64,000 nt of DNA from Haliotis rufescens (taxonomy: Eukaryota). The stretch lies in assembly GCF_023055435.1 (NCBI RefSeq), contig NW_025964001.1, positions 32,984,001 through 33,048,000 of the forward strand. Direction: 5' to 3'. The position numbers and the translations under genes are program-made. The notes beneath the pieces were generated by a model, which searched no databases, was not told the origin of the DNA, and worked only from the letters and a program-made list of their open reading frames with translations. Of this stretch, positions 1-64,000 are shown piece after piece; positions within the stretch are counted from its first letter, which is position 1, and each line of letters opens with the position of its first letter.

Positions 1-439
1 CTATCACGTAAAACCATTACCGATCGCTAACGAAATTGACGCACGAACGCTTTCACACATAGGTGTAGGGATCCATTGTTACAAGTCATAAACGTGTAAT
101 TTAATTAAAAGAGCAGGCAGGATGCGTAACGTTTAAAGTTTGACCATACGAACCTTACATATATATTGATTGATATTCCTAAAGTTATATACGGTCCAAA
201 TACTTGTAAAAGGAAATAACCGAAAGTGCCCATTCTTCTAAAAAAAATCAACTATTAAATACCCAAACGTCATCGTCATGCAATTTCTAAAAGATGAACA
301 ACTTGTTGACCTGACCAACTATGCGATCATCTGGTCCTGAACACATCGGTCGTTCTGATTATTGTAATACTAGTATAAACATAATAAGTATTGTGTATGA
401 TTATTTTCAAAAAGCTAAATTTAAGGAAACAAAACAGAA

Positions 440-22708: not shown

Positions 22709-23916
22709 CAGCTCCTTAAGTGAACCCAGTCCTATGTGCCATTATGTTAAACAACATATTCGTCTCGCATGCTATTTACCTTCACAAATAGAAGCAAGGG
22801 GAAACCCGCATGGCACCCAGTGTGGCCTCCATGTGTCATGAGCGTTCATCAAAGCTAGGCATGTTGTTATTGGTGAAACAATGAACGGAAAGTATTCATC
22901 GTATCCATTGGCCTCTTGTCCTGGAAGAATACAACAAGAAATTGATTGTTCAATGGAACCATCTGTACTAAATATTTCTTATTGTCATGGTTATGGAAAA
23001 GGTTGTACTCACTTAAAGGAATTAGTTCAATACACTTGGTTCTTAATATTATTCAGTTGACAAAACAGAGACCCACTTCCGGTGTAAAGGTTTTGTAATG
23101 CCACAAAAAGATATGTTGACATGCGTTATTGTTGCATACATTGATGATTAAAATACATTATGTAGTTCAGATTGTATGTTTTTGTGATTGTTGTGTGCGG
23201 AACAACCGATTATTTGCTACCCACTGAAACATCGTCAATCCAGACGCAGCGTTAACTACACAAAAATGCGGATTAGCAAGGTTCCCAGTGATCCACGAAA
23301 GATGGGGTTCCCGGAATAACGGGATTCGAACTAACGATATTTAACAATATACAGCATATGCAGCACGCATTCTCCCCCAGTTTGTGCTGAACATTGGCAT
23401 ATATTTAAGTCTAGCAATTCACCAGACACTGAATGATTTCTGCCACATATAATATCATACCATTGAGACATACACTGATGCAACGTTCATTGGTCAGTTA
23501 TTCTTAAATGGGTGAAGTTTACGAATAAGTTATATTGCTTTAAATCTACAAAGTCTTAACTTGATTCATGTAAGTTCCCAGATATAATCTGTGACACTCT
23601 TTGTTTCTACGTTTTGCTTTTACACTGTACTCTTTTACCAACAACGCAACTATGCAACAATAATCAGTTATGTTTACTTTACAGAATGAAAACTATGTGA
23701 GAATTTAAGTGACCTGACAATACAAGAGGTATGTTTCAACTATTAGTGCAGCTATGAGGTTACCACTTCGTACATGTTACACGTTTCTTGTCTCATGTTG
23801 GTTGGTTGGTTTGTTGGGATCGATGACATTGCATCAACCAAGTCAGCTAGCCTGACCACCCGATCCCGTTAGTCGCCTTTTACGACAAGCATAGTCGCCT
23901 TTCTTATCTCGTGACG

Positions 23917-25090
23917 TATACTACTCCAAAAGAGAAAAGCACAGTAAATGATTCAGAGTTGAGTATCAATATCAATAGGTGGTTTCACAATATGCATATT
24001 GATGGTCTTCACACATATTGATTTTCATTGACCGCTCGAATACAGAGCGTTTGCACCAGAACGTAAAATATGAAATTTGAAAGAAACAGCATAAATATGA
24101 AAGTCCCGTGAATATTATAAAACTTGTCATGCACGTGATACACGCGCACTGTGTCTATTAATGTGCAGTGCCAGAGCAGTGAGCGATGTGATGCGTGGAC
24201 AAAGTGAGGCTGAACGAAAATATGCCATTGGCTGGCGAATCTCTGTCAGTCGTGGCAAGGCGTTTCACAGAGAACCATAGGGTGACTTTAGCACCCTTAC
24301 TTAGCACAAGGAACAACGCGTGACCTGCTTCTGGCTGGAAGACCTTCGTCCTGGAAGACTACGGGACCACGACCACTAAGGACAGCTTAATCCGCTTACG
24401 TCATGCCAAAATCATCCCGGATGGCCCCGATAGCGATCGAGGATGTTGTTTTCAGCGATGAATCGATAATTGTTCTTCGACGTCCAGATTGCATAGCACG
24501 ACTATACAGGCTTCGTAATGAACGTTTCGCGCCAAACTGTGTTCAATAGGTGGACAGATATGGGGCTGCTAATGTTATGGTGTGGTCTCATACACTATTG
24601 GAACAGTCCTTGTCCCAGGCACCTTATCAGCCGTTCGTTACTGCAACGAGATCATTCGGCCACACGTATTTCACTCATAAAACAACAGAATGTCGTCTGT
24701 CAGCATGACAACGCCCGACAACACTCTATTAACAACTGTTTTCTTGGCACAGAACAATATTTCTGCTCTTCTGTGGCCATCCATATCACCAGATCTGAAC
24801 CCAATTTAACATGCGTGGAACGAACTTGATAGGCGTGTACGACTAGGTTGAACAGAGCCTCGTCGTTGTAAGACGTGTTGTTGGCCTTGCTACACGATTG
24901 GAATAACATCCCTAGACAGCTCATGCGGACTCTTGTTGATTCCATTGGTCGGCAAAGTCAGAGTCATTCATTCTAAGGTTGTCATACACAATATTAAGTG
25001 CTGTGTCCTTGACCTTTGTAACGCAGGGACGTTACTCATTTCGTAATTTTGAATGAATCCAAAAAACTGTACTCAAAATATGCAGCTTTT
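23917..25090 (+). mobile_element. Decayed Tc1-like element in intron 6 of paralogue A
   Basis: VVFSDES, QHDNARQH and SPDLNP motifs in shifted frames. Confidence 0.75.
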
Positions 25091-26229
25091 TATATAATAA
25101 ATATAGTTAAATTCAGCTATGCGTTTCATTGTTTGAATAGAATACCATTCAATTGACATTTAACACAAACTATACAAAATAACGTACCATCAACCCATTT
25201 CCTTGAGATGTTCGACACAAGCCCTATCCAAAAGTTAGTTTCATTCAGGATATCACTTGCAGTAGAAGTGTTCAGTTTGATCAAATCACTTGTGTGATCA
25301 GCTTGCATCCATGACTGCTTGTGGTTTGTATCTGATAGGGAAACACACATGCTCCTAGGACAATGTATCTGGGAAGTATCTGCAAAAGTATGAAGTACAA
25401 TGTATGACAACGTTTTTTGTAAAATGTGAAAAGTAATCAATTGTCACACAAGAAGATACAGTAAAGCACAATCCGAGGGCTTACGTGTGCTGATATTATT
25501 AAAATCATTGAGATGATCTTTTTGAGCTTGTCATACAAGTGACAGAGATATAAGAATGAACGTTCTTTAAAATGAAAAGGTTATACTCACTGTTTGCATA
25601 ATATGCAAATCTTCGGTTTTTTACTATACAGTTGTTGGAAAAGTCTAGTTGTATTGTTGATCTCCCCTTTTTTCTTCCATAATAGGCACATATCCGATTT
25701 CTGGTCGGAATAAACCCAATGTTTCCTACAAATAGGTGACAGGGACATAAAGTTCAGGGGGAACTTACATAAATTAATTATGAATCATCATTGATATAAT
25801 GAAAATGACGTACTTTGTACGCTATAAGTAAAAGCTTGAATGAGGAGTATAACCTACACTTTGTAACCATTACCATATGCCACTTCAATTGACAAGATAA
25901 AATACAGGACAACTGAGAGAAACTGTAGCAACGTATGTCTGTAACTAAAGCAAAACATGTATAGTATAATCTGTTAACAATCCCATCCGATGTTTTATAG
26001 GAATGTGGAAGGACGCACATACCAGTACCGCGTGTGTAGACTGACATTCCGGCATGGTTGCCACATTTTTCATCCAGGTTACCCGGACACTGCATCTCAC
26101 CTGCTGCACTGATATTTGGGACTTCATACGAATTGTCGAGACAATAACAGCTGGTCCCCTATAAATGATCAAACACTTAATGAGTTGTGTACTCCTGTCA
26201 CAGAAATACTTTATGATAATAATTATTAT

Positions 26230-35110: not shown

Positions 35111-38100
35111 CGTTGTTATATGTTTGTAACCAACTGAAAAGCTCTTTACATATAAATGTCATTGAATTCAGCCATTGCGGTTTATTCTATTAATACTATA
35201 CAACTTAAACTGACAGGTAAGCACAAAAATAATGAAACGTACCATCAACCCATTTCCTTGAGACTTTCAATACAAGCCCAATCCAAAAGTTATAAGATCC
35301 TGGAATATTCTGGATCTCTTTTGCAGTTGAATCGTTGAGTCTGATCAGATCATTTGAGTAATGAGCATGTGTCCATATCTGTTTCTGGCTTTTCGCTGAT
35401 GGGGACACGCACACGCTCCCACTGCAGTTTGCCTGGGGAGTATCTACAAACATATGAAATACAATGTCCGGTAACGTCTTTTTAGTTTACAATTAGAAAG
35501 AAGCCGATGGTAACACAAGATAACGGAGTGACAAAATACATGGGTTTGTATGAGTGCTCCTATCATGAAAATCGTTGTGATGATATGCTTTTATGATAGT
35601 CCATGACAATACAAGATATGTATGCTTAGCATGATTATTGTGTTGTGGACTTCATGAAGGAAATTTCACTACATTTAGATATGTCAACGCTTGAAATGCA
35701 TTCTGAAACCAGCATATGCTGCTTTTTAGCATTTTAGATCATTTACTTTTAAAAAGCGATATGTTTTCTGCAATCTGCATGCGCATGACAATTACGAGCT
35801 TCGGTTGACATTAGCGTTTCAGTTTAGTTGATTCTGGGGATTAAAATTTACATTTGTTAAATTCGCATTGGCCATGTGTGTCACTGGGTAAATCATTTCA
35901 GACTGCAGGAAACGCCGATTACGTAACAGAGTGATGTGAGATAACATAGGTCATACTTACTGTGGGAATAATATGCAAATCTTCGCACAAGGAGTATACA
36001 AGCGAGGTGATATTCAAATGTTATTGAAATTGTATGTGTCTTCAGGGCAACGGCACATCGCCAAGCTCCGACGGTATAAATCCAACGTTTCCTATAAAGA
36101 GGTGAAAGTGACATAAAGTCACACAAACATACACATGTTATTTATGACACAGCGTGATAATTTACATACAATTATCACGTACATTACTTGTAAAACCTTG
36201 AATGAGATGAATTGTTCAGTTTATGACAATTATCATATGGCTATTATGGTCACAACGTAGAGCAACCTGAAGTGAAACTTCAAGATAACAGCGTGATCTT
36301 GATGATTAGATTGTCACAATATCAACGTGAACTTTGAAGATACCACAAGATGATATGTTGCCTGTGAGTATAATCTTTTAACCATACTATCCGATATTTT
36401 ATATAGTATAAGTGTAGGGACGCACATACCAGTACCACGTGTATAGACTGACATCCCAGCCGCGTCGCCACACATTTCATCTGGGTTGCCGGGACACTGC
36501 ATTCCTCTTGCACTCGTATTTGTAACGTTGTACGAATGTCCGAGACAATAACACTTTACTCCCTACAAAACCCAAACACATAATGACTTTGTGTATTCGT
36601 GACTTTGTGTATTCGTGTATTCATTTCTGGTGTCCCCTGCTGTGATATTGCTTGAATATTGCTAAAAGTGGCGTAAAAACATACTCACTCACTGATTCAC
36701 TCACTAACTCAAGAATGCCATTGAAACATATTATAACTTGTTACGTCTGTCATAAAAAAACCCATTGATATCAATATGTAGAGGATCTTTTATTATCCAG
36801 GTGTACATGTACAACATCCATTACATTAACAAATAGTACCCCTCCCTCTCGTGTTTCCTTCATGTGTCGTGTGTGGGTTTTCAAAACAGAAGAAAATGTA
36901 CCAACGTGATCCTATTCTATATACCACTTTGGGATCAATTGTATTTGTGACAAAAAAAACCTCTTACGCTCAGGCCCACTGTACGGTTGGTTTTACAATG
37001 AAGTTGACACTCGTAAACAGAGTTACTGGACACATTGTTTGGGCTCGTTGTGGGTGATGCACTGTACCCATCATAGTTGTAGAGAGGGGTACCATCTTCT
37101 GTAATATCATATATTAGAGGCTTCAGTAACATACTAACTTCAAGTACAATTAATGCATAGACAACGCCACATTGATACATATATAGTATCTATTTAGCTT
37201 TGGGAACTACATGTACTTTTACTTTTGTAGACTCACCTGTCCATATCCATGTTGAATACCTCATGGCTCCTACCCAATAGCTTTTGTTACTGTGTAGAGA
37301 GTTTTCCACGACTGGAGGGAGAAACTCTGTATCAGAAATATACAGATCTCTCTTCGGCGCCATCTTACAGTTTTCCCGAGCATCCCACCAGTTGTTTTCC
37401 TGCTCGTTTATGAAGATGTGTTTTGTCTCCGTGGCTTCAAATGATTAATTAACATATTTTAAAATTATATCCACTGTTGGTATATACATATGCGACATAG
37501 TCAAGACATCTGCTTTCAGATATATAAGTATATATATTACTCCAAGTTTGCTAATGATCACCACTTTAAAAGGTAATACGTCAAATTGCGTGCATCTGTT
37601 GAAATAACCAAAGGCAATATTGCGTGAAGACAAGTTTAATGAATCAAAGTCCGTCGTTATTTGCCACACAATGTCAGCAAACAAGGTGTGACCGATAATC
37701 AGTCAGATCACCTGTCAAAAAGAGAATATCTCACCAAAACTGAAACGTCCAAAAATCACGAAAACAAATTCATTGTCCCCCAAAAACAACGCTAAGTCGC
37801 GCATATGAGATCTACGTGGTGCGGTCACAGCTTATCGCTGTCATCTCTTGCTCCCAATATACAAACATGCTCAGGATATAGTCGGAATCGTACAATCGAC
37901 TCTGCTTTTGGCAGAAATTTCTTATGAATATGGAAAGAGTTTTGTCGCTAATATTTGCCACAGAGCCGGTTTCGGCAGATTACAGGCGCGTGGTAAGAAA
38001 TGCCCCGGCCTAATTAATATCCACTTGGATATGCTAATCACGAACCTTCTGTGAAAAAGGAAAATTCATTCTACTGTCAGGTAAATCATCGTCTAATTTG

Positions 38101-49058: not shown

Positions 49059-49776
49059 TCATGTGTTATACTCATCAGTGGCCTTACATGTGGTCTCATA
49101 CGTATGGTTGTAGGTGTCATCCAACCTGATCACATCAGGCCCAGCACTAGCGACATCATAGTCACCTTCTTCAAACACCTTGTCTATCGCGCCAATGTGA
49201 CTGTACGAGTCATTTACTTTTCTGGCGTTCTCCCCTTGCTGTGGGGTGTCGTAGTTTCCCTCTGCAGCTTCCGTGGGGTCATACAAACCAGCATCACTTT
49301 TATCCCCTCCCGTGGAGCTGCACTTCTCGAAGGTGTGGTACTGAACACCCTCGTCGGAGTTGGCTACACCAGAACCTCCTGCAGATTTGTCCAGTCCAGT
49401 GTCCCTTCCATCTCCGCTTCTGTACTGTAGAATACATTCTGCTGTGTCGTAGTCGGGTCCGGAGAGATGCATGTAGGGCTTTCCTCCTGGCATGTCGGTG
49501 TGTTGTTTACTGGGCGTTGAGAGAGAATTGGACACCTTCTCAACATCAGTCTCAGGATGGTTCACGTAGAATTTCTCAGTGTGAGCATTGGGGTTTACTG
49601 TCGCCGTTGGAACAGGGGGAGTGAAAGGCTTCCCGTCAATTGTGTCTGGGGTTATAACAGAATATGCGCCATTGTCTCTCGGAACATCGAGACCGTCGTA
49701 GATCGTGTTTTCTGTTGGCGGGTTGAAGTTCACCTGTTGATTCGTATCTCTTCTATCCAAATGGAGTTTGCGTTGT
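49059..49776 (-). CDS. Exon 10: cytoplasmic tail with ITAM and multiple pTyr motifs
   Basis: Acceptor TTTCAG|A, phase 2; 14 Tyr; ends at TGA. Confidence 0.85.
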
Positions 49777-52700
49777 CTGAAACAACATTTGAAACATGAT
49801 TGAATGTGATGTACAAACATGCCCTTAATAATAAGTTCAAATAAGTTATGCTTACTTTATTGTTAATATTTAGCACAGTAAGTGGTTAATAAGTTCAGTT
49901 GTTCTTTTTAAGTGGTATACGCAAAGTAATCATTGGAATAACTTTGAAGGAAAATGGCCCCACTGGTCATCTCGGTCGGATTTGAGAGGAATCCATATTT
50001 AATAAGTTCACGTGACTGTCATATCACTGGCGGCAGTCGTGACCATTATATAAATGCTTCTCGATATCAACTTGTATAGTATGGTATACTAAGGAATTAT
50101 GCTATATTACTACTCCATTGCGTCCCGATGTATCATGACTAGTGGATCGAAATGTGTCGGGGCTTGTATCCCGTCCTCAACACTGACAAAACTGTCATGC
50201 TACTCATTTATAGGTCATATGGATTTGGCGAAAACACATGTTTGTGAATGGATGCACTAGTGTTGAATGTGGTTGCTTCAATGTTTGCCCGATATGTGCG
50301 TGTAACATATCATTTTCACACAGAAATATACAGCATTGCTCAATACCAGTAGAGAAAGCTTAAGATCAATTACTAATGTGTAAACCATCCTGTTGAAATA
50401 TAAGAAAAGTGATACATGTAGAAATTGTCTTATTTCACAAAACAGTTGCTTCAAAGATTTAAATAAACATCACATTAATTTAACAAAATAACAAGTTACA
50501 TGTCAAGAATGGTATCTGATAAATGAATTCATTCTTCAGATTCTGGTTTCTTTTCGCTATTTAAAGAAGTGCTGCCAGGAACCTCACCTTTGCAGAAGAA
50601 ATACAAGAGTCACGACTACCAGGAAGAAAACCACACATCCTGCAGCCAGCCCTATGCTTACACCTGGACAAAAAGGAAGTGTTAGATGTCAAAAGCTTGA
50701 TAAATATGTTAAACGTACATACTAGTTTACACAAGAAATATTGGGCATGTCCAGTAAGTATGTATACTATACTGAAGTAAACGATCACTATTGAATGCAC
50801 ACCGAAAACTGCTACCTTCATAGAAGTACACAATATATAATAATATGTCATGCAATCATGACAAGGGGCCTGTTACAAACAGAGCTAAGATGATTGTACT
50901 TTTGATATTTTAGCATAAACTAACAACAGTTGTGGAGCTAAATGCCCATTTCTGGTGTTCCCCGCCTGATAAAACTGTAATATTGCTATAATCTGCGCAA
51001 ACTCATACTCATTCACTAAGTCGCATTGTGGAATATTGAGTACTACTATATACAAACAATTAATTTTCAATATTGTAAGGAATAGAGATACGTGAAACTG
51101 AATTCTCTATCGCTTTCACATGGACTGTTGATAATACTGTAATTGGTAATTGTGATGATAGATGAGGTTTTACACCACTTTTAATAATATTTAAAAGTGA
51201 GGAATCGAACCCTGCTCTTTAGTGTAGCGAGCGAGCGTTTTTATGACAGGGTTACCTCTGCAGTGACCACTTACCCTTCTGAATATCAAGAGCTGACGGA
51301 CTGTCTGTGGTGGGATGAGAGGGATCAGCCCTGGAAACTGTTGATAAAGATGACGTTGCTAGTTTAGATATGATGGAACGGGTGATATAACAAGTGAAAA
51401 AGTCTCCNNNNNNNNNNNNNNNNNNNNNNNNNNNNNNNNNNNNNNNNNNNNNNNNNNNNNNNNNNNNNNNNNNNNNNNNNNNNNNNNNNNNNNNNNNNNN
51501 NNNNNNNNNNNNNNNNNNNNNNNNNNNNNNNNNNNNNNNNNNNNNNNNNNNNNNNNNNNNNNNCGGGCGGTAGTAAGATCTGAGGAAGAAAGGAACACAT
51601 TCCTTCATTAATAAGAAAAAGGACGATGTTGTTTTGCATTTTAGTATCATCTTATAACATTATCTGAGCGATGTATACGAGTGAATTAAAGAGAATCCAC
51701 TCCTCTTTACCATTGTGTAAAACAACATATTCGTCTGACGTGCTTAGTACCTTCACAAACAGAGGCAAGGCGAAAATGGCAGGGTAGCCAGTATGGTTTC
51801 CAGACGCCATCTTTTTTCAAAGCTTGGCATGTCGATATTTGTGAAACAACGAACGGAAGGAAGATGTAATCCTCATTTCCATTGGCCTCTTGTCCTGGAA
51901 ACATACAATTATCCACTGACTGTACAATGCAACCAGCGGTATTAATTATTCTAATTGATAAGGTTATGTTAATAGTTGTACATACTTACGTAAATAGATG
52001 AATGTATTTGGTTCTATGCTGTTGCTGTCTAGTTATTTGTAGTAATCAACTGCTAACTTATTAATTCAAACAAATCAAAGACCAATTTCCCGCTGTAAAC
52101 GTTTTTTACAATTTAGTGAGTGGCTGAGTATGTTTTTACGCCGCTTTTAGCAATATTCCAGCAATATCACGGCGGGGACATCAGAAATGGGCTTCACACT
52201 TCGTACCCATGTCGGGAATCGAACCCGGGTATTCGGCATGACGAGCGAACGCTTTAACTACAAGGCTACCCGACCGACCCTTTTTACAATTTAAACTGAC
52301 AGGTTAGCACAAAATAATAAAACGCACCATCGACGTATTTCCTTGAGACTTTCAATACAAGCCCAATCCAAAAGTAATCAGTTGGTCCTTTAATATTTTG
52401 GATCTCTCTTGCAGTGGAATCGTTGAGTCTGATCAAATCATTTGAGTAATGAGCATGTGTCCATGTCTGTCTTTCCGCTGATGAGGACACGCACACGCCC
52501 CCACTACAGTTTGCCTGGGGAGTATCTACAAACACATGAAATACGACGTCCGGTAACGTCTTTTTAGTTGTACATTTAGAAAGTAGCGGATGGTAACACA
52601 AGATGACAGAGTAAAACGCAATATATGGGATTTTATAAGTTCGTATTTTAGTAAAATCGTTGTGATGATATGCTTATAAGATAGGCCATGACAATACAAG

Positions 52701-55700
52701 ATGTTTATGCTTAGTGCATTGTGTTGTACTTGTCGTGGGCTGCATGAAGGAAATTTCAGTCTATTCAGATATGTCAACGTTTGAAATGCATCTTCAAAGC
52801 AGTTTCATCTGCTTTTTAGCATTTTATATAATTTACTTAATACATGTTTTCTGCGCTCTCCATGCGCGTGACAGTTACGATCTTGGGGTGACATCAGCGT
52901 TTTAGTTTAGTTTATTCTGAAGTATTAAAGTTTACATTTGTTGACTTCGCATTGGTCATGCGTGTCCTGGGTAAATCATTTCAGACTGTAGGAAACGCCG
53001 ATTGTGTCACAGAGTGATGTGAGATAACATAGGTCATACTTACTGTGGGAATAATATGCAAATCTTCGCTTATAATCTATACAAGCGTAGTAATAGTCTA
53101 GTTCTATTGAAACTGTATTATTCATTTTCACTCCATAAGCACATCGGCCATCCTTCGAGGGTTTAAATCCAACGTTTCCTACAAAGAGGTGAAAATGACG
53201 TAAAGTCACACAAACATACACAAGTTATTTATGACACAGCATAATTTACATACAATTATCAGGTACATTACCTATACTTGTAAAACCTTGAATGAAATGA
53301 ATTGTTCGGTTTATGACAATTATAATATGACTATTATGTTCACAACGTAGAGCAGCCGAAAGTAAGGCTTCAGGATAACAGCGTGATCTTGATGATTAGC
53401 TTGTCACAATATCAACGTGAACTTCGAAGATAACACAAGATGATATGTTGCCAATGAGTACAAGCTTTTAACAAGCTTATCCGATATTTTATATAGTATA
53501 AGTGTAGGGACGCACATACCAGTACCACGTGTATAGACTGACATCCCAGCGTCGTCGCCACATATTTCATCTGGGTTGCCCGGACACTGCATCCATCTTG
53601 CACTCGTCTTTGTGACGTTGTACGAATTTCCGAGACAATAACACTTTTCCCCCTACAAAAAAACAAAACAACAAACACATAATGACTTTGTGTACTCCTG
53701 TCATAGTCAACCAGGGCACGGCATCCCACCTGCTGCACTGGTATTTGTGAGGTGAGGTGGAATGGGGTTTAACGTCGCGTCCAAGATTATTGCACTTATA
53801 TAGCGACGTGCATGCACGTGTATCTATATGTGAGGCTGCTTGTACTAGTCCGGACTAATGCCGATTTATAGTGCTAGCTCACTGAGATACCATGCCGCAA
53901 CATGAATACCCCACTCAGACACAGTATACTGACTCCGAGCCGACCAGTCCTTGTTTTAGCCCCTTAATGCCGAGCGCCAGACAGGGTAACAACAAGTACC
54001 ATCTTTTAACGTCTTTTGGTATGACGCGGCCGGGGATCGAACCCCGGACCTTCCGCTCTCCGGGCGGACGCTCTACCACTAGACCACGAAGGCGGTCCAC
54101 TGGTATTAGTATATGCTTACTTTTTCCAAGACAATAACACTCCTCCCCTTCCCACAACAAACCACAAAATATGTTGTATACTCCTGTCATAAAAAGAGTA
54201 TTTTCCTAACATGACTAATGATATGAACTAAAGCGGTTCTTACATTATCATGGTGTGCTTGTACAACATCAGTCACATTCAGAAATAGAATCCCTACCTC
54301 CCTCATGCTTTCTGTATGTGTTGTTTGGGGTTTTCAAAACAGAAGCCAATGTAAATATGTGATAGAATTCTTTTAACCACCCTTTCAGACACAAAAGGTT
54401 TTACTGTCCTACGTTCAGGCCTATTGTGCGGGTGGTTATAAACTAGTATCCAAAAGAAACGATACCAACTTATTTTCAAAATTGTTTTTTACTAAGTGAA
54501 TTGTCTAGTATGAAAACATGCCAATTCGTATTGCACATCCCAAACACAGCATAGTCGATAAAAAATACCGGGAACACGTGATCACTTCCGGGAAAAAACG
54601 TAAATTTCGTGAAAGTGACATTTCCCTCTCTAGCATGTTATGCACGTGCATAAAAACTGTATAAATCGGCTGATCAGACACGTTGATATCACAGCAACAA
54701 AAAGAACACAAGATATGCCACGTTTGACAGCCATCGAGAGAGAGAGAGCCGTTGGAATGGTCCAACAAGGAGCGTCACACGTCGACGTCGCCAGAAGGTT
54801 GGGCTGCGCACGCATCACTATCACCAGGTTGATGCAGCGGTTACGTTAGACAGGTCAGACGTCAGACAGGCCCAGGAGTGGAAGACCACGAGTAACCACG
54901 CCCCGTGAACATCGTTACATCCGGGTAATACACCTAAGGAACCGCACCGTAACAGCGACGTCCACGGCGGCTAAAGCACTGGGACACAGGATCAGTCGAC
55001 AGACCGTCTACAGGAGACTACGGCAGTATGGTATCCGGCCACGTCATCCCTACCGCGGACCGCTCCTGACGCCTCGACACCGGAACAACAGACTGACTGG
55101 GCCAGGCGAGTTCGACGTTGGCAACGGCGGGACTGGGCACGTGTTATGTTCTCTGATGAGAGCAGATTCCTCATCTTCAGAAACGATGGACGGCAGCTTG
55201 TATACCGACGATTTGGTGAACGTTTGGCGCCTAACTGTATCCAACAGGTCCGGCCGTTTGGAGGTGGAGGGTTAATGGTTTGGGGTGGCATATGTGATGA
55301 CGTCAAAACGATGCTCGTCGTAATTCGTGGAAACCTGAATGCACAGCGTTATCTTGATGACATCCTACGGCCTGTTGTGGTGCCCTTTATTCAGCAACAG
55401 CCTCGTGGACTCCTTTTCCAACATGACAATGCAAGGCCACACACAGCAAGATTGACACAGAACTTCCTTGCCAACGCCAACGTACAGGTTTTGCCATGGC
55501 CCGCATGTTCACCGGACATGAATCCCATCGAGCACTTATGGGACCACCTCGATCGGCAAATCCGACGTCGCCGTGTGCCTCCAGTCAACGTCCAGGACTT
55601 GGAACGATGTCTCCTCGAGGAATGGCAACGCATCACTCCCAACGTCATCAGTCCGTAGGCGTGTTCTGGCATGTATTGATGCTCACGGTGGACATACCCG

Positions 55701-58700
55701 CTACTGACTTGACTTTGAGACGTGTGGTGTGACATTTCCCGTTGTTTCTGTGAATAGTGCTCTAACGAAATGTTCATTTTTCGACCCCACCCATCTTTAA
55801 AGGCTTGTCATATTGGTTGTACAGATTTTATTGCAATGAAATTTTTGTACAGATGCTGTGAAAGGATTTCTCAAAAGCATAACACCAATCCTAAACTTCT
55901 GCATTGTTTAGTTTTTCTTTTATGTCGTTGCAAACAGGTGGTATCGTTTCTTTTGGACACTAGTTTACATTGAAGCAGACCCGAAAAAGTGAATTATAAA
56001 GCGACCCTGTTGTATTTCCTGTTGATGGTGTACTGTACACATCATAGTTGGAACGTTCAGAGAAAATAACACATTTCCCCTACAAAAAATAGTACATATA
56101 ACATGTTAGGAAACATAAACCTTTATGGATAACAACTTCTGGTTTTTGTTTGGATTTAGCGACGTTTCGATGTAGATTCTTCCACCGTTATCAAGCTGGA
56201 GTGGAGGAAGGTGTAAGAATCTACATCGAAACGTTACTTACTGGAATAAACAGACGTTGTTATCCATAAAGTTGTATACTTTCTTATTTACTCATCAACT
56301 GTGTGAAGCCAATTTCTGTGATATTGCTTGAATATTGCTAAATGTGACGTAAATCCATACTCACTAACTAACTCTAGAATGCCAATCAAACATATAACAT
56401 GTTGTGTACTTCTGTCATAAGAAAACCTTGATATGAATATGAAGAGGATCTTTTATTATCCTGGTGTGCTTGTACAACATCAATTACATTAACAAATAGC
56501 ATCTCTCGCTCTCGTGTGTCGTTTGTGGATTTTCAAAACAGAAGAAAATGTACCAACGTGATCTATTCTTTATACCACTTTGGGATCAATAGTGTTTGTG
56601 ACAAAAAACCTCTTACGCTCAGGCCCACTGTGCGGTTGGTTTTACAATGAAGTTGACATCCGTAAACAGAGTTACTGGACACATTGTTTGGGCTCGTTGT
56701 GGGTGATGCACTGTACCCATCATAGTTGTAGAGTGGGGTACCATCTTCTGTAATATCATACATTAGAGGCTTCAGTAACAGATAAACTTCAAGTACAATT
56801 AATGCATAGACAACGCCAGGATGATACATATATATAATATCTATTTATCTTTGGGAACTACATGTACATCTACATGTCATATCATGCACAAGAGGCATCC
56901 ATAACAGATTAACTATACATACAGATAAATGCGTACACAACGTCGCTTATATATATCATTAATTTATATATTATCTATTGAGATGTGGGAACTACTTCTA
57001 CAGACTCACCTGTCCATATCCATGTTGAATACCTCATGGCTCCTACCCAGTAGGAAGTGTTGTTGTGTAGAGAGTTTTCCATGACTGGAGGGAGGAATTC
57101 TGTGTCAGAAATATACAGATCTCTCTTCAACGCCATCTTACAGTTTTTCCGAGCATCCCACCAGTTGTTTTCCTCCTCGTTTATAAAGATGTGTTTTGTC
57201 TCCGTGGCTGCAAATGATTTAGTAACATATTTTTAAATTATTTGTACTGTTTGTATATACATATGTGACGTAGTCAAGACATCTGCTTTCAGATATGCAA
57301 GTTTGCTGACGATCACCACTTTAAAGGGTGATACATCAAATCTGTTGAAATAACCAAAGGCAATATTGCGTGAAGAAATCTTTAATGAATCAAAGTCCGT
57401 CGTCATTTGCCACACAATGACAGCAAAAGAGATGTGACCAATTATCAGTCAGGTCACCTGTCAAAATAATAATATCTTACCAAAAACGAAACGTCAAAAA
57501 ATCATGAAAACAAATTCATTGTAAAAAAAAACCCACTAAGTAGCGCATATGAGATCTACGTGGTGCGATCACCGTCATCTAATGCCCCCAATAAGTGCCA
57601 TGATGGTTGCCAAGGGGTTCTTGTTCCACTCTTCATTATTACCATTGCCGAGTTCCTGTAGAGATGCCGGAGGGAAAGGGCGTTGTGAGAGGGCGATCTG
57701 CAGCTCTTTCCATATATGTTCGATAGGGTTGAGGTCTGGTGACCGTTGATGCTCTGAGTAGGCATCAACGATCCTGGCACGATGAGATCGTGCGTTATCG
57801 TCCATAAGGAAAACCTCGGTCCAATAGCAGCAGCATATCGTCTCACGTACACATCTAGAAATAAAGCGACAAAACCCTTTCCATAAAGTCATCCCTGTAA
57901 CGCCCGCCTGTCACCATGCTCCGCTGTTCTTCCAGCCCTACTGATCCCATCCCATGATTTACCCCTCCACACACACACTTCCATAGTGGTTACGTTCGGC
58001 TACGTTGGAATCCTGTTTTTCACAAACTCGGGCAAGGCGATCTGTGAAGTCCAGATAGTATCTCGATTCATCAGTGACAAATACTGGAGCTCAATCCTGG
58101 TCTGTTCAGTTGACGTGATGACCAGCCTATGTTGGGTCAGTGGGATGTGAATGTATGCCCTCAGTGACCGGGCATCAGCCTAAGGGAGACGATTACGCAC
58201 TGTCTTAGTAGAAACGTTAACGTCATTGGCCTTCCTCGGGTAATTTCTGATTGTGGTTGCAGTCACGACGTGATGACGTCTTGCTGCAATCAGGAGAAAC
58301 TTGTCTGCCCGCTGTGTGAAGGAACGCTGTTGAACACCTTCATGTCGCTGGCTAAGCGTATCCAAACGTCTGACACGTCGCTATATAAGTGCAATAATCT
58401 TGTGCTGGAGGTTAAAGCCCATTTCACCTCCATGCCCCGCCGATCACAATGTGGCTGACACCGAAGACATTTGCAACGTAACGTTGTGTTGACCCGGTTT
58501 CAAGCATGCCTATGCATCTACATAATCCTTCGGTCGTCAAACGACGATTTGATGCTAAGAGGGGATCAGTGCATTTCATTGTTGAAATCCACAGTAGCAA
58601 ATGCGGTTGTGCTCTCTGATGATGATGCGCAACGATTCTGTCACGATACATCCAATCACAGGTTTTCAAGCACCTCGTGCACATGCATCGTGCTCATGAC

Positions 58701-61700: not shown

Positions 61701-61836
61701 TGATATAAACCACATTAAACGTAAAGACATTAAAATGACTTAAAAGGACATCATGTGAACACGTTTACTTACATATGTTGACACTAGTTGCATATACACA
61801 GTGCAGGTAGCAGACAAGCAGCCTCGCGGTCCACAT
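49059..61836 (-). CDS. Intact 10-exon type-I membrane receptor (paralogue C), 626 aa: SP - CTL/WSC/CTL ectodomain - stalk - TM - Tyr-rich ITAM tail
   Basis: join(61836-61773, 57207-57010, 56747-56617, 53652-53520, 53178-53044, 52525-52328, 51894-51751, 51358-51275, 50663-50588, 49776-49059) = 1881 nt. All introns GT-AG, phases 1,1,0,1,1,1,1,1,2 compatible, no internal stops. Exon bounds 1-9 are conserved in the paralogues. Confidence 0.8.
50588..50663 (-). CDS. Exon 9: transmembrane helix
   Basis: GVSIGLAAGCVVFFLVVVTLVFLLQR, followed by basic QRK; TCCAG| ... |GTGAGG. Confidence 0.85.
51275..51358 (-). CDS. Exon 8: Ser/Thr/Pro-rich stalk
   Basis: ATSSLSTVSRADPSHPTTDSPSALDIQK; TAG| ... |GTAAGT. 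Confidence 0.75.
51408..51563. other. Assembly gap (156 N) in intron 7 of paralogue C
   Basis: Direct reading. Confidence 1.
51751..51894 (-). CDS. Exon 7: CTL-like domain C-half
   Basis: GQEANGNEDYIFLPFVVSQISTCQALKKDGVWKPYWLPCHFRLASVCE (C..W..C......CE pattern). Confidence 0.85.
52116..52280 (-). mobile_element. SINE family 1, full length
   Basis: 13-bp TSD TTTTTACAATTTA. Confidence 0.9.
52328..52525 (-). CDS. Exon 6: second CTL-like domain N-half
   Basis: NCSGGVC...QTWTHA...YFWIGLVLKVSRKYVDG (WIGL and W/YxDG motifs). Confidence 0.85.
53044..53178 (-). CDS. Exon 5: CTL-like C-half
   Basis: GNVGFKPSKDGRCAYGVKMNNTVSIELDYYYACIDYKRRFAYYSH. Confidence 0.8.
53520..53652 (-). CDS. Exon 4: WSC domain C-half
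   Basis: GEKCYCLGNSYNVTKTSARWMQCPGNPDEICGDDAGMSVYTRG (WSC CxC...CPG...CG....SVY). Confidence 0.9.
53746..54097 (-). mobile_element. tRNA-derived SINE family 4 (Meta-domain-like), full length
   Basis: A-box TGGTCTAGTGG, B-box GGTTCGATCCC, central GTCATACCAAAAGAC...GGCGCTCGGCATTAAGGG, 10-bp TSD CACTGGTATT. Confidence 0.85.
54441..55965 (+). mobile_element. Near full-length Tc1 (DD34E) transposon with an inactivated transposase
   Basis: TA TSDs and ~27-bp TIRs AACTAGTRTCCAAAAGAAACGATACCA. ORF from 54715 (MPRL..HTH) with TAG at 54847 and a frameshift near 55095. FSDESRF, QHDNARPH and SPDMNPIE with 34-residue D-E spacing. Confidence 0.95.
56158..56197 (-). ncRNA. Putative minimal type-I hammerhead ribozyme in an inverted Penelope-like terminal repeat (56121-56271)
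   Basis: AGC-UUGAUAA-C-GGUG..CAUC-GAAA-CG-UC-GCU: U3:A8 core variant, 3-bp stem I, palindromic ACGU stem III. Confidence 0.45.
56617..56747 (-). CDS. Exon 3: WSC domain N-half
   Basis: EDGTPLYNYDGYSASPTTSPNNVSSNSVYGCQLHCKTNRTVGLS. Confidence 0.85.
57010..57207 (-). CDS. Exon 2: first CTL-like domain N-half
   Basis: STETKHIFINEEENNWWDARKNCK...TSYWVGAMRYSTWIWT. Confidence 0.9.
57570..58830 (-). mobile_element. Decayed Tc1-like element (C-specific), with a SINE family 4 tail at ~58372-58432
   Basis: MLETGSTQRYVANVFGVS, TDESRY, FLMDDNARSHR and SPDLNPIEHIW. Confidence 0.8.
61773..61836 (-). CDS. Exon 1: signal peptide
   Basis: MWTARLLVCYLHCVYATSVNI|GTAAGT; 64-nt exon conserved in all three paralogues. 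Confidence 0.8.
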
Positions 61837-64000
61837 ATCTCCGGCCTGTGTGTCATGCATCTACTCGTGGTGGTGTATCCAACAGGGAAGAAGAACGCTC
61901 ACAACGGTTCGAAAGAAGGGATTATTATATTGGCAAAACCCGTGAAAGACGTCTTTGTTCGATGAATTGCAAAATCATAGCACCGAGTTTTCCCTATACG
62001 ATAACATATACGATGAGCTAAATTTAGTTACGAGGGTTGATTGATAAGATTTGAGCCTCACGAAGAATTGAGTAAGAGTGAAATCTTTCCTTGAGGACAT
62101 TACATGTCATAGAGGCATATTCACAGTACACGCGTCCTTTGAGCAATATGTTTCGCTGTGACAAGTCAGTAAAATAAGGAGGGTCTGTTGAACAAAAGCC
62201 TTTCTGGATCAGCTTCAAACAGAGATAGATTAGCACGAGACACGTTGTGCTTGGTGCGTTTTTGATCAGATGTCAGAAGCTTTGGAACCCAACGATTTGA
62301 TACTTTCTTCATTGCCAGAGTTTCTGTGAGATACTCTGTCCTGGGAAATGATTACTGAACGAGCAATACGACGCCCAGATTTAAACTTTGCGGCCCACCT
62401 CTTTACAGTTGTATAGAAAGTAGCATCCATTCCTTCGTACATACCTCAGCTCAATATTGCATGCTTTCCAACAGAGGAAGAGACTATCCTCCCCATTACT
62501 TAGTTCCTTTCCTTCAACAGTTAAGCGAATCTTCATAACCTAAACTTCGTTTCTGTGTCTTCACTTTGCATGTCTTTATGACGGGTGCCACATGTGGGGC
62601 AAGATACGCTCACCTTTTCGCGAACACCTGATATCATCACTATTTGATAGTCATTGCTTAACATAAGCAAATGATATGCTCAGAGTCGTACATTACTAAA
62701 TTCGTAGCCTGCAACGGCGTTGTACATACTCTACGGACAACGAGTTCCAGTTTGGCTTGTAATGTTCCATCTTGAGGTCACAAAGAGCATCTGCTGAAAA
62801 TGGCAACACAGTCATGGCTGATGAAAAAATGAGTTATAAGCGTGAAACTTGTCATTACACATACATGCTGTCGACAATGTTTGATGGGCAGTCAATCGGG
62901 TGCTCTAAAGGATATATACGGTTCGTTTTTGTTCATCTTATTTGAAATCCCGGTTAAAATCACGCTCAAAATGTCTGACGCTGCAAATCATTCTCGCTGC
63001 ACGGTCAGCGATCTAGTTTATCGAAAAAGCTAAATAGCTTATCGTAAAGGTAACGTGCGACCTTATTTTCTGTGTTTAATGATCATTAAACATAATCCAC
63101 ATGAACGCAAAACATTTCGTTATTAACTATGTCAGCTGAGGGAAAATCGTCCAACTGTGCCCTTCATACTGTGGTCAGCCTGAACCATGTGAACTTACAC
63201 GTTCGTTCATTCGGCGAAAGAGATGATCAGCTGTATGTGCATATTTAAAATAAGATAAGTTAACTATTTTTTGCTAAAAAGCTTCAGCGTTTGATAATAC
63301 AATTACAAATCAACATTACATCTGGATGTTTTCCTTTGTTTGCAATAATCACGGTCCTAACGTTTGTTTATTGATTAACGACGCATTCAGCAATAATCCA
63401 GCTGTATAACGGCGGGTTGTAAATAATCTGGACCAGACAATCAAGTTATCTTTATCCGTAGAAATCATTTCCAACTGAAGAAGGAAAAGAACAAACTTAA
63501 AGAAATAATTAGTAGCATATTACACCTATCAAGAGAAACAGGTCAGTGTTCAAAAACAAATATGCGTCTTGTTTATTTCCAAATGACTGAATGTATACTC
63601 TATATTAACCATGAATATGTTGCATTGCTGTGTTGAGGGTCTCCTTGAGAAGGACATTCGGGTTATATTTAAGTTATCGATTTGCGAAGTGACTTAAGTT
63701 TAATTAACTATTATATTATGCTTATTTAGTAGTCATGATCACCAGCCTAGACAAGCATGTAGGGGGCACGTGTGTCTTTGGTGCCACTATTCGGTGTGCA
63801 GAGCGGCGACCCTTTGGCACACCAGAAACCTATAATTGTGGGTTCGTATTCTGGTTTCTCCCCAATTGTGTTTCCAGGTTTGCCAGCACCATGCTCGTGC
63901 TCCTGGATTCCAAAGTTGTAACCTGCAATACCTCCTGACAAGCAGTGATATAACTGTAATACTGTTAAAAACGGTATTTAACCCAACTAACTCACTCACT

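Follow-up and report, generated by a model that had tools for sequence, protein, structure and literature searches.

The stretch of DNA analysed here (the window) is a 64,000-nt segment of the Haliotis rufescens genome (NCBI RefSeq assembly GCF_023055435.1, contig NW_025964001.1, positions 32,984,001 to 33,048,000 of the forward strand), and coordinates are counted from its first letter. On its minus strand lies LOC124120054, a gene of ten exons (E1 to E10, Table 1) whose NCBI model, P0151, is a 627-aa "uncharacterized protein". The product is a type I membrane protein in which E2 to E7 encode an ectodomain of five half- or whole-domain modules with phase-1 introns between them, in the order N-terminal half (N-half) of a C-type lectin domain (CTLD), WSC domain, CTLD C-terminal half (C-half), N-half and C-half. 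The WSC domain splits a CTLD at the position of its long loop and is not a separate linear domain following a complete CTLD. The N-terminus encoded by E1 was taken as a putative signal peptide from its hydrophobic stretch. The cytoplasmic tail carries YDGL-x8-YSVI near the membrane, followed by many further Tyr, and was modelled as disordered (predicted local distance difference test, pLDDT, < 50).

An earlier note, made from the sequence alone, had described E2 as a CTLD N-half, E3 and E4 as a WSC domain and E5 as the CTLD C-half. The strand, AG/GT borders, coordinates and translations of these four exons agree with those given there, and their joining is borne out by spliced contigs and by P0151. 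The translation of E2 reads ...NNWWDARKNC...YWVGAMRYSTWIWT, that of E3 EDGTPLYNYDGYSASP...VYGCQLHCKTNRTVGLS, that of E4 GEKCYCLG...MQCPGNPDEICGDDAGMSVYTRGT and that of E5 GNVGFKPSKDGRCAY...YYYACIDYKRRFAYYSH; E5 of P0151 has FAYY at the place where most paralogues show YACY. By tblastn, all ten exons are open and match P0151, whose joins are those of the earlier reader; the borders of E7 were computed from the reading frame and P0151 and not read from a joint. The module exons are all multiples of three in length with phase-1 borders (E2, 198 nt; E3+E4, 264 nt; E5, 135 nt; E6, 198 nt; E7, 144 nt), and the WSC cassette E3+E4 (88 residues) has phase-1 borders at both ends. Spliced contigs from four public runs (taken to be RNA, a guess supported by the intron-less joins) were aligned to window positions 52300-57300 and covered E2 to E6 with 0 differing letters in the four runs. 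The 379-nt X1 contig (0 differing letters) spans E5, E4 and E3 and continues into E2. The E3/E4 joint (53651/56616) skips 2964 nt with CT..AC ends, which are GT..AG on the minus strand, and was present in 4/4 runs. The E2/E3 joint (56747/57010) and contig pieces 56616-56747 were both present in the X1 and X2 contigs, and the X5 contig joins E6 (52344-52525) to E5 (53044-53160). A skip from E2 to E5 was absent among the joints listed for the spliced contigs of the four runs, contigs being assemblies that drop rare forms.

Table 1. Exons of LOC124120054 and repeats in its third intron, in window coordinates
Feature	Position	Strand	Length and phase	Predicted content	Basis
Exon 1	61774..61860	-		Start codon and signal-peptide-like N-terminus, P0151 residues 1-29	tblastn of P0151 on window, 100% identity
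Exon 2	57010..57207	-	198 nt, phase 1-1	CTLD N-half: beta1, alpha1 with C52, alpha2, beta2 YWVGA...WIWT	
Exon 3	56617..56747	-	131 nt, phase 1 to 0	End of CTLD N-half (EDGTPLYNY), then WSC N-half (C126, C130)	
Exon 4	53520..53652	-	133 nt, phase 0 to 1	WSC C-half (C143, C145, C162, C170; CGD replaces CGG)	
Exon 5	53044..53178	-	135 nt, phase 1-1	CTLD C-half-like piece (C196, C216)	
Exon 6	52328..52525	-	198 nt	Second CTLD N-half (C235-x4-C240 hairpin; alpha1 Cys replaced; YFWIGL)	
Exon 7	51751..51894	-	144 nt	Second CTLD C-half (C317, C333, C341)	
Exon 8	51273..51353	-		Ser/Thr/Pro-rich stalk, approximate borders	tblastn, P0151 residues 338-364, 85% identity including intron overrun
Exon 9	50587..50664	-		Transmembrane helix, P0151 residues 364-389	tblastn; AlphaFold2 model helix 366-398
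Exon 10	49059..49778	-		Tyr-rich cytoplasmic tail including YDGL-x8-YSVI, and stop codon	
Tc1/mariner-like element	54438..55967	.		In intron 3, outside protein	Transposase-like open reading frame pieces
tRNA-derived SINE-like repeat (short interspersed element)	53747..54098	.		In intron 3, outside protein	tRNA-like sequence

The CTLD identity of the N-halves was established at the level of sequence profiles. A profile of 12 E2-like exons was searched against the PDB; CTLDs made up 58 of the best 60 rows, matched over the N-terminal ~60 residues of their carbohydrate-recognition domains, with DEC-205 as the best match (E 4.2e-6), BDCA2 at E 1.6e-4 and the two non-CTLD rows at E 0.47 and 0.91. 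Among 12 paralogues with identities as low as 37%, the W, C, G and Y residues of E2 do not vary. On P0151 the Pfam profile PF00059 (Lectin_C) scored 25.1 bits (cut-off 22.6, E 3.2e-5) over residues 42-115 (profile 2-73 of 107), and phmmer against the PDB returned only eight weak LOX-1 rows (E 0.85-1.3, residues 41-103). By hhalign the E2 set matched the E6 set (probability 93.8%, E 1.7e-7) and the E5 set matched the E7 set (E 0.012) with three Cys in register. E6 is a second N-half and E7 a second C-half, so E5 is not the sole C-half, and the statement of the earlier note that only exon 5 supplies one was dropped. In the AlphaFold2 model of P0151, E5 forms three strands (194-202, 205-212 and 221-226).

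A CTLD running as one contiguous stretch of about 110-130 residues was not found from the N-half to the next C-half, the two being an 88-residue WSC cassette apart. When single exons were searched against Pfam, E2, E3 and E5 each gave no match at E<=10 and only E4 did (WSC, profile 47-81 of 82, E 0.0028); these blanks reflect the shortness of single exons and are no sign that the domains are missing. For P0151, P0002 and P0152 the precomputed Pfam annotation is empty, so the split domain does escape it, as had been anticipated. A rise in Lectin_C score on excision of the WSC segment had also been anticipated; a natural isoform pair, P0012 without the WSC cassette and P0165 with it, gave no match at E<=10 in either protein, an outcome that is uninformative to negative. 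CTLDs with Ca2+-dependent sugar binding have the motifs EPN or QPD, and WND, in their long loop and beta4. P0151 has KPS and LDY at those places in E5, and E7 has no EPN/QPD and shows YWLPC instead; with these motifs missing from both CTLDs, a classical Ca2+-dependent sugar site is unlikely. Ligand binding, if any, would more likely proceed via the WSC domain and a composite surface than via a classical Ca2+ site.

Two AlphaFold2 models were used, of P0151 (model 1) and of P0021 (model 2; an H. rubra paralogue, 31% identical, with four canonical Cys in both CTLDs), both computed from one 27-sequence family alignment. In these predicted models the WSC region takes up a PAN/Apple-like fold with a long L5 loop. 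Foldseek aligned it to yeast Wsc1 (7pz2_A) with TM-scores of 0.69 (root-mean-square deviation, rmsd, 2.5; 93 columns) in model 1 and 0.66 (rmsd 3.2, 92 columns) in model 2, at probability 1.00, and to Kremen1 (5fws) with a probability that was 0.99 for model 1 but 0.51 for model 2. The Pfam WSC profile (PF01822) scored 23.1 bits on P0151, under the cut-off of 27.8 (E 9.1e-5; residues 112-171, profile 16-81 of 82), and 29.5 bits, over that cut-off, on the paralogue P0013. The domain holds six Cys (C126, C130, C143, C145, C162 and C170), whose spacing is that of C2-C5, C7 and C8 of Wsc1 and Kremen1; C1 and C6 are absent (YDGY replaces YxGC), and the domain lacks the eight Cys and four bridges of a complete WSC domain. 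Only these six Cys are nearly invariant within the WSC region of the 27-protein alignment, and the C1-C6 bridge is lost family-wide. This bridge is C122-C186 in Kremen1 (PMC5014086) and C27-C86 in Wsc1 (PMC9024836) and is described as specific to, and strictly conserved in, Wsc-like domains (PMC9024836, PMC5014086). The count of six Cys out of eight in the earlier note, and its statement that the two missing ones form a single disulfide in Kremen1, a paired loss, were both correct. The abalone domain is a WSC/PAN-like fold with six Cys and without the C1-C6 bridge: it has the PAN/Apple-like fold of Wsc1 (7pz2) and Kremen1 (5fws) and keeps bridges C2-C4, C3-C5 and C7-C8, but unlike them it has CGD in place of CGG and is inserted inside another domain instead of standing in linear order.

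The genome holds 23 E2-like exons at E<=0.01, all on one contig, in clusters near 16, 17, 18.8, 25.4 and 33 Mb. Twenty-one ten-kilobase loci and the window were searched with per-exon hidden Markov models (HMMs) from the family alignment, and 25 gene copies, all on the same chromosome, were tabulated. The order E2-E3-E4-E5-E6-E7 is collinear in all 25, with E2 found in 24, E3 in 23, E4 in 24, E5 in 20, E6 in 24 and E7 in 21; the HMM match to E5 was at E<1e-3 in those 20 copies and at E<1e-2 in two more, a prior regular-expression search having missed most copies. No gene copy without a WSC domain was found among the 25; locus L020 has no E4 or E5 match and does have E3. In locus L033 (G000:C223:18795500-18805499) one E2-E3-E4 set follows another within 6 kb, ahead of a single E5-E6; this is either a unit of N-half and WSC duplicated in tandem or a pair of partial genes. 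When 1.84 billion representatives were searched with the E2 profile, 303 proteins matched at E<=1e-3, and the pattern "W.W then WSC" was carried by 17/159 of the proteins retrieved. Family proteins with a named source are all from Haliotis (rufescens, rubra, asinina and cracherodii) and all "uncharacterized".

In an alternative reading, E2 and E5 are decayed remnants that have ceased to fold as a CTLD, the protein consisting of WSC plus one CTLD, or the whole copy is a decaying pseudogene in a transposon-rich cluster. The lack of Pfam matches to E2, E3 and E5 alone agrees with decay, as do the Tc1-like element, the SINE and the decayed exon-like pieces in intron 3, the frameshifted E5 of neighbouring window copy 2 and the dropping of single half-domain exons in some predicted isoforms. 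Decay is nonetheless very improbable, given ten open exons that match P0151, spliced contigs without differing letters over E2-E6 in four runs, the invariant W, C, G and Y positions of E2, module order retained in all copies, and pLDDT values across E2 and E5 of 63-92 in P0151 (ectodomain blocks 41-300) and 72-95 in P0021 (ectodomain blocks; predicted TM-score 0.71).

Which N-half is completed by which C-half was read from structure searches with the two models. The VIA structure search, which is independent of Foldseek, was run on 48,161 PDB chains and the best 50 rows were kept per model. For model 1, 50 of the best 50 rows were CTLDs (Z 11.6-14.8, rmsd 2.2-3.8, 93-124 residues aligned), and in all of them the aligned range started at residues 22-35, in the E2 half, and ended at 343-351, in the E7 half (approximately 27..345). 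For model 2, likewise 50 of 50 were CTLDs (Z 10.5-13.9), with ranges from 1-12 to 319-327 (approximately 8..321). Over the best rows of both models 89-124 residues were aligned, and the best scores were Z 14.8 (rmsd 2.5, 111 residues) for model 1 and Z 13.9 (rmsd 2.2, 105 residues) for model 2. The predicted models thereby contain a CTLD fold, with two helices, two sheets and paired N and C termini, whose two halves lie ~220 residues apart in the chain, the distance being made up of the WSC domain and a second CTLD. With E2 pairing with E7 in the models, E5 by elimination pairs with E6.

The arrangement that the exon order itself suggests is simpler: E2 and E5 would form a CTLD with the WSC domain alone in its long loop, and E6 and E7 an ordinary second CTLD. 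This order would be expected if, of two CTLDs in tandem, the first had received a WSC cassette in its phase-1 intron, and four canonical Cys are kept in E2+E5 and in E6+E7 in most paralogues. Neither AlphaFold2 model shows it, however, since 100/100 of the best VIA rows span E2 to E7, and a contiguous E6+E7 domain would have started the ranges near residues 232 (P0151) and 205 (P0021). The Foldseek results, in which no full CTLD match to the PDB reached E<=0.001 in either model and only the pattern of weak rows was used, contain no full CTLD match for E6+E7: in model 2, single-CTLD targets at rmsd <4 align over just 55-57 columns, despite the full-length Lectin_C match of P0021. Foldseek alignments of ~155-173 columns, a length fitting E2 to E5 (no ranges were printed), are poor (TM 0.30-0.40, rmsd 15.8-17.3), and in model 1 BDCA2 (3wbq_B) was aligned over 315 columns with TM 0.62. 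We regard the simple arrangement as unlikely, at somewhat better than one chance in four.

The cysteines bear on the same choice. P0151 has 14 ectodomain Cys (52; 126, 130, 143, 145, 162, 170; 196, 216; 235, 240; 317, 333, 341), and with canonical intradomain bridges all 14 pair only if C52 (E2, alpha1) bonds C341 (E7, beta5). The four canonical CTLD Cys are then present in E2+E7 (C52, C317, C333 and C341; bonds inferred), and the E5+E6 unit of LOC124120054 retains only C196 and C216. Of the 20 copies in which E5 and E6 could both be aligned, 13 keep the last E5 Cys together with the E6 alpha1 Cys and have all four canonical Cys in E5+E6, 6 have lost the two, 1 lacks only the E6 Cys and 0 lack only the E5 Cys; the alpha1 Cys of E2 was kept in 24/24 and the last Cys of E7 in 21/21. 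Copy win_c2 was left out of this count because its E5 match (E 9.3e-3) did not pass the filter; direct reading shows that both Cys are missing from it. If E5 pairs with E6, the two Cys of a bridge are predicted to disappear together; if E2 paired with E5 and E6 with E7, each double loss would leave two orphan Cys: C52 and C341 in LOC124120054 and likewise two Cys in five other copies. The E2 and E7 Cys are themselves never lost. Loci with the double loss include L014, L017, L022 and L024. In a tree of E2, the one tree used for this test, double losses fall in three places, namely the 33-Mb subclade with LOC124120054, L014 plus L017, and L024; L014 and L017 sit inside a well-supported 16-Mb clade whose other six members, including L030, keep both Cys. 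The association is descriptive.

On the two models and the Cys pattern together, the E2 N-half and the E7 C-half probably form one discontinuous CTLD and E5+E6 a second, circularly permuted one. Several observations weigh against this pairing. The five models of P0151 range from a whole-chain mean pLDDT of 56 down to 41; models 1 and 2 share the same 27-sequence alignment and are not independent; and the pairing was read indirectly, from the ends and lengths of the alignments and their TM-scores. The Cys co-loss is not statistically established (two independent pairs on supported branches, sign test p 0.5), and three lineages (L026/P0032, P0158 and P0012/P0165), whose P-numbered proteins are from other species, have kept the E5 Cys while the E6 Cys is missing. 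As a C-half, E5 is weak by sequence, a profile of eight E5 pieces having given 0 matches to PDB sequences at E<=10 and the hhalign comparison with E7 standing at E 0.012. E6+E7 is by sequence an ordinary full-length Lectin_C match in paralogues (P0021 and P0162, 33.1 bits; P0021 residues 224-318 match profile 3-106), as the simple arrangement would have it. Among the isoforms, all of them NCBI predictions, P0012 (H. cracherodii, X4) skips the WSC cassette in frame and joins an E2-like to an E5-like exon directly, leaving E2-E5 contiguous as simple nesting expects, although it has no Lectin_C match; isoform P0165 (X2) retains the cassette. Isoforms skipping E5 alone (P0003) or E6 alone (P0175, P0004) fit neither pairing.

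The predicted isoforms of LOC124111983 (H. rufescens; P0174, P0003, P0175 and P0173) show in-frame skips of E5, E6 or both: X1 is complete, X2 lacks E5, X3 lacks E6, and X4 (P0173) lacks E5 and E6 together, leaving N-half, WSC and C-half, which fits the pairing of E2 with E7. For the nesting proposed in the earlier note, the outcome is divided: the WSC domain does sit where the long loop of a split CTLD would be, but E5 is not favoured as the piece that completes the domain of E2, models and Cys both pointing to E7. That note had named as refuting its proposal a model in which the exon 2 and exon 5/7 segments form no CTLD fold; in the predicted models exon 2 and exon 7 do form one, so the proposal stands unrefuted.

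On this pairing of E2 with E7, the E2 N-half would pack with the E7 C-half into a discontinuous outer CTLD closed by a C52-C341 bridge. E5+E6 would be a second CTLD, continuous in the chain, with its C-half before its N-half (a circular permutation). The long-loop region of the outer CTLD would host both the WSC domain and the permuted inner CTLD, giving one compact, intertwined head. Speculatively, ligands would be recognised via the WSC domain and the variable E5 surface, and signalling would proceed via the YDGL-x8-YSVI of the tail. We tentatively propose, at slightly less than even chances, an abalone-specific receptor family with such an intertwined head, a split CTLD hosting WSC and permuted CTLD, built of phase 1-1 modules removable by splicing (WSC alone, E5+E6 together), from which one gene could give several recognition heads on the same tail resembling an immunoreceptor tyrosine-based activation motif (ITAM-like).

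The domain families involved are known, and the part that differs is the topology: a discontinuous CTLD, a nested WSC domain without the C1-C6 bridge and, possibly, exchanged half-domains. The best structural matches of the modelled outer domain are natural killer (NK) and myeloid CTLD receptors (NKp80, 8qmd; Dectin-1, 2bpd; CLEC5A, 2yhf; CD72, 5b1r; Z 13.0-14.8, rmsd 2.2-2.7, 102-112 residues), none of which, to our knowledge, has a Ca2+-sugar motif. Like them the abalone protein is a membrane receptor with a CTLD head, and its tail carries a Tyr motif, but they are type II proteins with one contiguous CTLD, whereas it is type I with a CTLD split at the long-loop region. Polycystin-1 and other proteins combine WSC and C-type lectin domains in one extracellular region, as separate domains contiguous along the chain; in the abalone protein the WSC domain interrupts the CTLD. 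Exchange of structure between CTLDs at the long-loop region is seen in the loop-swapped heterodimers of snake venom, such as factor IX/X-binding protein (1iod), whose chain 1iod_A was among the VIA matches listed for model 1 (Z 12.1, 93 residues aligned). In factor IX/X-binding protein only the loop is exchanged, between two chains, whereas the abalone protein would swap whole C-halves within one chain, so that one of its CTLDs becomes discontinuous and its partner permuted. A literature search of limited scope found no account of a WSC domain nested inside a CTLD.

If the nesting is true, it would be a clear natural domain insertion at the CTLD long-loop region, normally the part that forms the binding site; if the models are right, there would also be an intramolecular half-domain exchange that creates a permuted CTLD. 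Split domains of this kind escape annotation, and NCBI labels all these proteins "uncharacterized". The genes number at least 23 on a single chromosome, vary in their C-half exons and encode a tail with a Tyr motif, and are a candidate immune-receptor family in a farmed mollusc; a role of so expanded and variable a family as pattern-recognition receptors is speculative. Since the exon modules are phase 1-1, exon shuffling and combinatorial splicing can be tested directly.

Intron 3 contains, besides the repeats in Table 1, two decayed exon-like pieces (55963-56079 and 54110-54148); the spliced contigs contain neither these pieces nor the repeats. The Tc1 insertion interrupts an E3-like piece and the SINE an E4-like start (GEECYCLGK), and the pair resembles what a duplicated WSC cassette would leave behind. 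Contigs of 1549 nt (~1.5 kb) from all four runs match the Tc1/mariner-like element with 16 differing letters and two insertions (one T added after 55096 and 17 letters after 55641); the copy in the window thus differs from the transcribed or multi-copy form. Over the SINE-like repeat (53747-54098) contig depth reached 1e4-1e5, with many loose ends at the borders. In intron 1, between E1 and E2, a mariner-like transposase remnant was found on the minus strand (57560-57910), with a 110-aa open frame and DDE-type motifs recognised by eye. Two paralogous copies lie elsewhere in the window, at 35962-37432 and 22778-26158. In window copy 2, E5 is frameshifted (36089-36060 versus 36060-35962), and the NCBI model P0152 (LOC124120083) fuses exons E1-E3 of copy 2 with exons E4-E7 of copy 3 over ~10 kb.

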